A stretch of 64,000 nucleotides of DNA from the NCBI GenBank assembly GCA_047495785.1, contig JBLDXI010000007.1, forward strand, positions 1,922,001-1,986,000, given 5' to 3'. The translations under genes were made by a program, and so were the position numbers. Each line of letters begins with the position of its first letter. Positions within the stretch are counted from its first letter, which is position 1. Source of the DNA: Lepidodermella squamata. Lineage: Eukaryota > Animalia > Gastrotricha. Shown piece by piece: positions 40,633-42,551 of the stretch. Under the pieces are notes generated by a model. It saw only the letters and a list, made by a program, of their open reading frames with translations. It made no database searches and was not told the DNA's origin.

Positions 40633-42551
40633 TCATTCGAGCTTGGCCAGTTCGGAGGCATAAACGCCCACCGACTCCATGTCCCACAACACGAAATAGA
40701 CTTGCTTAATGCTAGATCCAATGGCGGACGCGAAATAGTCCTTTATGGCGTGTAAAATTGTTTGCGCTGCAGTTTGCTTCGGAAAACCACCACTGAAAAA
40801 ACATCAAAAAATATGAAAACGAAAATAAATATTTTATAAAAATTAAGGTGGAGTTTTTCAATTTTTACCGGCCCGATCCAATAGATGGGAATGCAATCGA
40901 CACAAGGTTCAACCGATCTGCCCCTCGCAGGCAATTTTTAACCGTAGCGCTGAGATCATCCACGGCTGTGGTTGTTTCGGCGGCCCGTGCCCACGTCGGC
41001 CCATTGCAACACATGACAAACTTGGCTGCTATCTCAGACTGGCTGACAGCAACCGCAGCGGCTATCATTTCAATCATCAATTTAATGCGAAAATTTTAAG
41101 CAAGCGCGCGTATTTCTAAGCGTATGCTCCTAGTCCTGGTCGAACGTAACGCACCACATCAAAAAAATTAGATCGTCTTGTTAGAAACTCAGTGGGAAAT
41201 TGCGAAGTGAACAAAATTGCAAAGCACACATCTCCACCTTAATTTTTTCGATTATTTTAGCTGTGTTCCTCCTACCTGCCGGTGCCTAGGGCGGTCAGGG
41301 CAATCGACCGCAGTTCGACCTTATCGGCCTGGACAAGAATGTTGTGAACAGCACGTTCGAGATCGTCGGTGTTGGTCGCCGGAATGACGTTGGCGTGTAT
41401 TACAAATTTGCAAGCCGCAAAGCTCGCAGCCGAAATGGTGGCTTGAAAATAGATTGAAATCAAACGAATCAAGTTTACACACAACGCAAGTGGAAGTGAT
41501 AATTCAAGTACTCGGTTAGAAAATCACACAGAGCCACAAAAACTCAACAGCCAGGACTAGCTAATTGCAAGCTTAACTAGCTTTTCTCAAGCATTTTTTC
41601 ACTAGATGAGAAACATACCTTGCGTCGGTTGGAGCGAACCGTGCTTAGCGGCCAAATCTTTCACGTCGTTTTCAAAGTCTTTTCCGCCCGCTTTTGTCAA
41701 AGCAGTAGCTGAAAAATCGCATCAATTAAAAAAAATCCTCCTTAAATAATTCAAAATGAAGACTTACCGACTTCCCCGGAGAGGTTGAAGGACGCATTGG
41801 TAGGGTTAACAATGGCGTCGACAGACAACTGGGTAATATCGGATTGCACCACGGTCAATTTTTGGCCAGCAATCAACTTCTTCTCAGAAAGAATCGTCAA
41901 CTGCGGCTTGGATGACGTCGCGGTTTCGCCCTCATTAGAATCAGCGTTGCTCGCCTCATCATCCGCAGCTGCCTTGCGACCTCCCTTCTTGCCTCCCTTT
42001 GGCGCAGCGGGGGCTGCCTTTTTCGCCGGGGCCTTCTTCGCAATAACAGGACTTGCCGCCCGTTTCGGGGCAGGGGCTGCCTTCTTCTTAACCTGGATAG
42101 GTGAAACAACTGGAGTTGGGGCTGACGCATTGCTAGAGCCCGCTCCAATTTGCGCCTTAAGCTGTGGCAAGGATTTTTTCGCGATGAACGGCTGAATTTT
42201 CGGAATTACACCACCACCTGGAATGGTGACGTGATCCAACAATTTCGACAGCTCGTCGTCGTTAGCCACAGCTAGCAGGATGTGTCGAGGGGTGATGCGG
42301 GTCTTCTTGAGGTCTCGAGCCGCATTTCCGGCCAATTCCATGATTTCAGCGGTCAGGTACTCGATAACAGCGGCGGTGTAAACCGGCGCGCCGTACGAAA
42401 TTCTCGTCTTTTTCAAAGTCTGGCGGAAATAGCGATGGAATCTGCCGACTGGGAAGCAAACTCCAGCTCGCTTCGACCGCGAAATCGGCGTTTTATGCGA
42501 CCCGCCTCGAGCCTTCGCACCGGCAGCACGTGGAGTAGGAGTGGCCGACAT
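40633..42551 (-). CDS. macroH2A: Histone macroH2A; exons 42551-41768, 41708-41619, [41441-41276 or 41061-40869], 40792-40633
   Basis: H2A fold ([39 protein letters not shown]), K/A/P-rich linker, macro domain ([45 protein letters not shown]). Confidence 0.95.

Follow-up and report, generated by a model that had tools for sequence, protein, structure and literature searches.

The macroH2A gene in the window

The window, by which we mean the whole 64,000-nt stretch of DNA that was analysed, contains a complete macroH2A gene on the minus strand, with its ATG at 42551 and its stop at 40633. As judged from its domain composition (an H2A fold, the H2A C-terminal motif, a basic linker and a macro domain), this gene is macroH2A. 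Exon 1 matches Pfam families PF00125 (Histone, E 2.2e-12) and PF16211 (Histone_H2A_C, E 2.3e-10). The best matches of the full-length protein are the macroH2A proteins of Lingula, Tubulanus and molluscs, at about 50% identity, and the best PDB matches of its macro domain are macroH2A1.1. The exons are given below with the evidence for each in parentheses; splice joints are written as pairs of positions, X1 and X2 are two runs of contigs, and L001 is a metagenome contig from a relative, all of which are described in the following sections.

41768..42551, minus strand: macroH2A exon 1, with the start codon, the H2A histone fold, the basic linker and the start of the macro domain
41619..41708, minus strand: macroH2A exon 2, constitutive, 30 residues (joints 41768>41708, 41619>41441 and 41619>41061; translation)
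41276..41441, minus strand: alternative exon 3a, 166 nt, variant copy (X1 joints 41619>41441 and 41276>40792; X2 contig; Pfam; L001 ortholog)
40869..41061, minus strand: alternative exon 3b, 193 nt, canonical copy, containing TVKNCL (X1 joints 41619>41061 and 40869>40792; Pfam; L001 ortholog)
40633..40792, minus strand: exon 4, the last coding exon, constitutive, ending in ELAKLE, with the stop TGA at 40635-40633 (translation; the 3a and 3b joints both end at 40792)

Two homologous exons for one segment of the macro domain

Exons 3a and 3b are each preceded by AG and followed by GT, are open in the frame that is used, and have a length of 3n+1; the coordinates, lengths and phases that an earlier note had read from the DNA for this pair are thus borne out. 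Each exon on its own is recognised by the Pfam Macro profile (PF01661), 3a over profile positions 49-105 (E 7.5e-6) and 3b over positions 45-105 (E 1.7e-10), and the two share 45% identity over 33 residues (E 2e-8). Both align to chain positions 101-156 of 1zr3, the structure of human macroH2A1.1. We inferred human residue numbers by comparing the length of this chain (211) with that of the isoform (369), which gives an offset of 158 and places the cassette at about residues 257-315; all residue numbers below are on this scale. The segment comprises a beta strand, a loop, a helix and the G-x-G phosphate-binding loop, and it ends at the G-S-G-R loop.

Exon 2 ends in a single base of a split codon. 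Joined to 3a and exon 4 it gives an open frame of 399 residues, and joined to 3b and exon 4 one of 408 residues with the same stop, so that the two full-length isoforms differ solely in a cassette of 55-64 residues. Translation of a form with both exons, or with neither, runs through a frameshift into premature stops, which supports the exclusivity of 3a and 3b. More generally, the 3n+1 length of the cassette exon means that the reading frame makes any tandem copy mutually exclusive with the original.

The canonical residues of 3b are Cys273, Cys294, Phe308 and Arg315, and at these four sites 3a has Ala/Val, Ile/Leu, Leu/Val and Ser/Gln, respectively. The loop that follows the FVIH strand is 7-9 residues shorter in 3a than in 3b. 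As the earlier note had described, the phosphate-binding loop is canonical in 3b and altered in 3a. The 3a loop reads GTG for GSG, and the G-x-G-x-G-G backbone is present in both copies.

Transcripts carry one exon or the other

Run X1 is a public run of assembled contigs. Its label as RNA was a guess, and we take it to be RNA because its introns are gone at GT-AG boundaries, a poly(A) follows the upstream gene, and a non-genomic leader is present at two 5' ends. Its contigs contain the joints 41619>41441, 41276>40792, 41619>41061, 40869>40792 and 41768>41708. All four joints by which the use of 3a and 3b was to be checked are therefore found in spliced contigs, at the exact bases, and the proposed pair of mutually exclusive exons is real and expressed, with transcript contigs carrying one exon or the other. 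A second run from a separate study, X2, adds a 359-nt contig that reads exon 2, 3a and exon 4.

Both isoforms are abundant. In X1, word depth is 297-311 at the 3a joints and about 187 at the 3b joints, and their sum comes near the 407-572 of the constitutive exons, word depth taken from contigs being a rough guide only. We found no joint between 3a and 3b, and none between exon 2 and exon 4, in the contigs of X1 and X2. Rare forms can be missing from contigs, so the exclusivity of 3a and 3b holds for the assembled transcripts and the isoform ratio is a rough figure. A third run, X3, consists of unspliced genomic DNA from another strain. Its 3b departs from that of the window at two bases, each a third codon position and each change read as synonymous, and its 3a shows no difference.

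Leader trans-splicing and the neighbouring gene

The 5' end of the macroH2A mRNA lies close to the end of an upstream PICK1-like gene, and the contigs of X1 define one further feature there.

42570..42576, minus strand: trans-splice acceptor region of the macroH2A mRNA (X1 loose ends at 42576 and 44339 carry one leader)

The PICK1-like mRNA receives its poly(A) at about 42581. Only 5-10 nt beyond this point the macroH2A mRNA starts, and its 5' end carries a non-genomic leader (…ATCTGCGAATTTGATTTGTG, then tcttag/tctaag), which also caps the PICK1-like mRNA, at 44339. A search of the 64,000-nt window did not find the leader sequence encoded there. These contigs are direct transcript evidence of spliced-leader trans-splicing and of an operon-like pair formed by the PICK1-like gene and macroH2A.

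Both exons are conserved in a relative

The closest protein in a large protein collection, P0001, is 87% identical to the window's protein in the histone fold. It is encoded on a 16-kb metagenome contig, L001, with the gene order of the window, PICK1-like and then macroH2A. For a neighbouring ALG11 gene of the window, one metagenome relative matches at 58% identity, and all matches to named species, in animals, fungi and plants, are at about 34-41%. L001 has orthologs of both alternative exons: 3a at L001:2763-2928 (166 nt; pN 0.153, pS 0.673) and 3b at L001:3155-3344 (190 nt; pN 0.252, pS 0.735). Both are open, are flanked by AG and GT, and keep their phases. Comparison of the window with L001 gives a dN/dS of about 0.10 for either exon, with synonymous sites near saturation. 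On these ratios both exons are under strong purifying selection, and the comparison of both exons with a relative that the earlier note had proposed thus speaks against neutral decay of either copy.

Within L001:343-3702, which holds the PICK1-like and macroH2A genes in that order, the 59-nt intron that separates exons 1 and 2 in the window is absent. Further upstream, within the counterpart of the window's exon 1, there is an additional intron with an acceptor near L001:2388.

Divergence of 3a might suggest that this exon is a decaying duplicate or functionless splicing noise, as it diverges more than 3b does from all other macroH2A and has weak matches outside the lineage. This is hardly credible, however: against L001 it is 3a that is better conserved (76% identity versus 66% for 3b), the frame is open through 3a to the normal stop, contig depth in X1 is higher for 3a than for 3b, and the 3a form recurs in X2. 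We therefore rejected 3a as a dead copy on both selection and expression. A search with 3a alone against 1.84 billion representatives gave only four weak matches, each to a long protein that aligned in several stretches, and no 3a-like macroH2A. A scan of metagenomes with exon 1 returned only H2A-like loci of 40-53% identity, without macro exons.

The same exon pair in molluscs, nemerteans and a brachiopod

The pair is not a private invention of this animal. RefSeq isoforms annotated as X1 and X2 in 11 lophotrochozoan species from three phyla (molluscs, nemerteans and a brachiopod) differ only in the cassette exon, as do the window's two isoforms, so that the pair was already broadly annotated in invertebrates. 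In Pecten maximus (both isoforms 389 aa) and in Mya arenaria the difference is confined to the cassette segment. Look-ups of protein clusters added Lingula, Gigantopelta, Pomacea, Mizuhopecten, Argopecten, Lineus, Littorina and two Haliotis species, in which all differences again fall within the 59 residues of the cassette exon. The set of lophotrochozoan pairs that we used comprises Pecten, Mizuhopecten, Argopecten, Mya, Haliotis, Gigantopelta, Pomacea, Littorina, Lineus, Tubulanus and Lingula.

The genomes of Pecten and Tubulanus each contain two tandem exons of 175 nt, the variant copy upstream and the canonical copy downstream. The variant, which we call N-type, reads HVN…AVKN[IV]L…IA[IL]PSI[SG]SG-N/T, and the canonical R-type reads HCN or HVN…VKNCL…AFPSIGSG-R. 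As in the window, it is the same exon that is duplicated, its length is 3n+1, and a variant copy precedes a canonical one that ends in GSG-R. The window's pair differs from the lophotrochozoan pairs in that its copies are 166 and 193 nt long and about 45% identical over their C-terminal half, whereas theirs are 175 and 175 nt and 66-78% identical; moreover, 3a has a shortened loop and GTG in place of GSG.

Single cassette exons of 175 nt with the same boundaries are present in Saccoglossus, a tick, a spider and a coral, which makes the exon an old unit with conserved phases. In Saccoglossus, an 11-residue partial repeat of the exon end (SVAVPSIGSGE) lies at L003:13881-13913, 30 bases past the single cassette exon; a duplication may have left it behind, or it may mark an alternative donor. 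The protein model P0049 of the centipede Strigamia maritima, a myriapod, contains a full cassette copy ending in …SLAVPPFGTGN, followed directly by a partial second copy ending in …SLALPSVGSGR. This arrangement suggests a tandem exon pair that was mis-modelled as if both were included. In ticks, the single cassette (L004:18047-18221) has its G-x-G phosphate loop replaced (…AVPPLATQS, …IPPLITHNTSPSQKQ). Proteins with the replaced loop are P0018, P0022, P0027, P0033, P0038, P0044 and P0070, among them those of Dermacentor, Amblyomma and Ixodes, the others being Logan proteins of the same sequence type. From these sequences, the canonical ADP-ribose loop seems to have been lost in the tick lineage.

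A 2025 paper places the alternatively spliced macroH2A exon at the origin of vertebrates and mammals (PMC12551714), and surveys of annelid and mollusc histones retained one transcript per gene or leave isoforms unmentioned (PMC12153100, PMC12210499, PMC5550673). The papers covered by our literature search contain no description of an invertebrate macroH2A exon pair. Apparently, the pair has been annotated by pipelines in several phyla and has gone undescribed.

Origin of the pair

In trees of the 11 lophotrochozoan pairs, copies group by type across species, and the N/R label takes a single change in 100% of bootstrap trees, so this duplication predates the split between molluscs, nemerteans and brachiopods. 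The occurrence of one and the same cassette pair in molluscs, nemerteans and a brachiopod makes it probable that the switch is old and not specific to one genome.

For the pair in the window, we lean slightly towards inheritance from this old lophotrochozoan (or older) N/R pair, in which case 3a would be a fast-evolving N-type copy and 3b an R-type copy. The exon, its phases and the order of the copies, with the variant upstream, are the same as in Pecten and Tubulanus. The strictly type-specific sites of lophotrochozoans are Cys/Val273 and Arg/Asn315, and there 3b, which groups with the canonical type, has the R states Cys273 and Arg315. By comparison, 3a has the non-R states Ala/Val and Ser/Gln, and the 3a of L001 has Val273 like the N-type. 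These N-like states may nevertheless be ancestral, because they also occur in single-exon species (coral, hemichordate and spider). A tree constrained to place 3a with the N-type exceeds the free tree by 0.84 lnL (AU p 0.55), although the branch leading to 3a is very long (about 2.2-2.6 substitutions per site) and the free maximum-likelihood tree instead joins 3a and 3b of the window with both exons of the relative, at 93/82.

This last grouping favours a separate tandem duplication in the lineage of the window, with the likeness to the lophotrochozoan pair due to convergence, an origin to which we give somewhat less than an even chance. Convergent likeness would follow from the 3n+1 length of the cassette exon, since any duplicate would automatically be mutually exclusive. 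In the first data set a clade of this lineage's own was not rejected (AU p 0.19), and neither was 3a with the N-type (AU p 0.35). The exon lengths, 166 and 193/190 here against 175/175 elsewhere, also fit a duplication of its own. On the other hand, the order of the copies and the diagnostic contrasts match those of the old pair, the likelihood under orthology is equal or slightly better, and lineage composition or gene conversion between neighbouring exons can unite the copies in a tree of 59 columns. The earlier note had proposed an independently evolved switch: this stands with respect to the vertebrate switch, of which the window's pair is independent, while within invertebrates the pair may be an old inheritance.

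Possible RNA pairing between the introns

A repeat search identified a perfect duplex of 16 nt between the intron that follows 3a and the one that follows 3b.

41232..41247, minus strand: 5' arm of the 16-nt perfect intronic duplex, 29-44 nt downstream of the 3a donor
40838..40853, minus strand: 3' arm of the 16-nt perfect intronic duplex, 16-31 nt downstream of the 3b donor; pairing would loop out 3b

Pairing between the middle and downstream introns, expressed as a computed energy excess, has z=-3.5 in the window, a value reached by 1 of 300 shuffles. In L001, too, pairing between the corresponding introns exceeds that of shuffles (z=-3.0), through a different sequence at similar positions. 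A stem between these introns would loop out 3b and bring the 3a donor beside the acceptor of exon 4, and the conserved pairing, as computed, may thus bias the choice towards 3a. Around 3a there is a 10-nt perfect GC-rich complement (41551-41560 / 41130-41139), and pairing between the upstream and middle introns is not above shuffles in the window or in L001. This complement crosses the duplex that brackets 3b.

Mutually exclusive splicing guided by RNA structure is known from the docking and selector sites of Dscam and from 14-3-3 zeta. In those systems, as here, intronic complements bracket an alternative exon, and their pairing would loop that exon out and bring the splice site of the other exon next to a constitutive one. 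Unlike the Dscam type, the window has one duplex supported by computed pairing, around 3b, and no docking site shared by competing selectors.

Relation to the vertebrate switch and possible functions

Overall, the locus is best explained by a tandem duplication of a 3n+1 exon in the middle of the macro domain, from which splicing takes exactly one copy to make two histones, and we regard this explanation as quite likely to be correct. The assembled transcripts have one of the two cassettes spliced in, and frame incompatibility clears forms with both or neither from the proteome.

To our knowledge, no histone other than macroH2A has a metabolite-binding domain. In vertebrates, the 1.1/1.2 splice switch sets whether chromatin binds ADP-ribose and dampens PARP1. 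The vertebrate and window systems are alike in having tandem homologous macro-domain exons, used one per mRNA, that alter part of the ADP-ribose pocket. They differ in which part: in vertebrates the alternative exon supplies the N-terminal part of the pocket (…NPTNADIDLKDDL / …HPTNTDFYIGGEV) and covers the segment with the NPTN motif, whereas the window's cassette, with the GSGR loop, spans about residues 257-315. In the window, the homologue of the vertebrate alternative exon lies within exon 1, which is constitutive, and the claim that the window's pair occupies a different position from the vertebrate 1.1/1.2 switch is therefore upheld.

The two cassettes may change how the macro domain handles ligands of the ADP-ribose type or partners, and such a change would give protostomes a counterpart of the vertebrate switch in the other half of the pocket. 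That 3a and 3b differ in ADP-ribose binding itself is only a guess, and a loss of binding by 3a cannot be claimed because the Gly-x-Gly-x-Gly-Gly backbone of the loop is kept. It is a serious possibility, though not the one on which we would settle, that the cassettes are alike in ADP-ribose binding and differ in partners, stability, modification sites or redox-sensitive cysteines. Together with the loop backbone, 3a retains the hydrophobic pattern of a folded macro domain, and the differences at the type-specific sites 273 and 315 are changes of side chains, with the loop not lost. As for cysteines, 3b has three (272, 273 and 294, the first two adjacent in ...VMCCN...) and 3a has one there (...AACKF...). 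Against equal binding, residue 315 comes immediately after Gly314 of the phosphate loop, and part of the ligand pocket lies within the cassette. Mutants of human macroH2A1.1 at Gly314 lose binding.

A broader scenario, which we put forward as speculative and rather unlikely as a whole, is that the switch is ancient and overlooked, protostome-wide or even bilaterian; that vertebrates kept the R-type only and later made a second switch at the neighbouring exon; that the isoforms differ in their handling of ADP-ribose or PAR; and that an intronic RNA duplex steers the choice between them. If this were true, chromatin-linked sensing of NAD metabolites would have become switchable on at least two occasions, through one genetic trick applied to the two halves of a single pocket.

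A second, independent switch in invertebrates would mean that switchability of this pocket is a recurrent, selected solution. The switch of the window's type concerns the other half of this pocket; strong purifying selection maintains it, and several phyla have it in common. Recombinant macro domains of scallops, of Lingula or of the window's animal would be simple systems in which to study the tuning of ligand binding beyond the changes specific to vertebrates.
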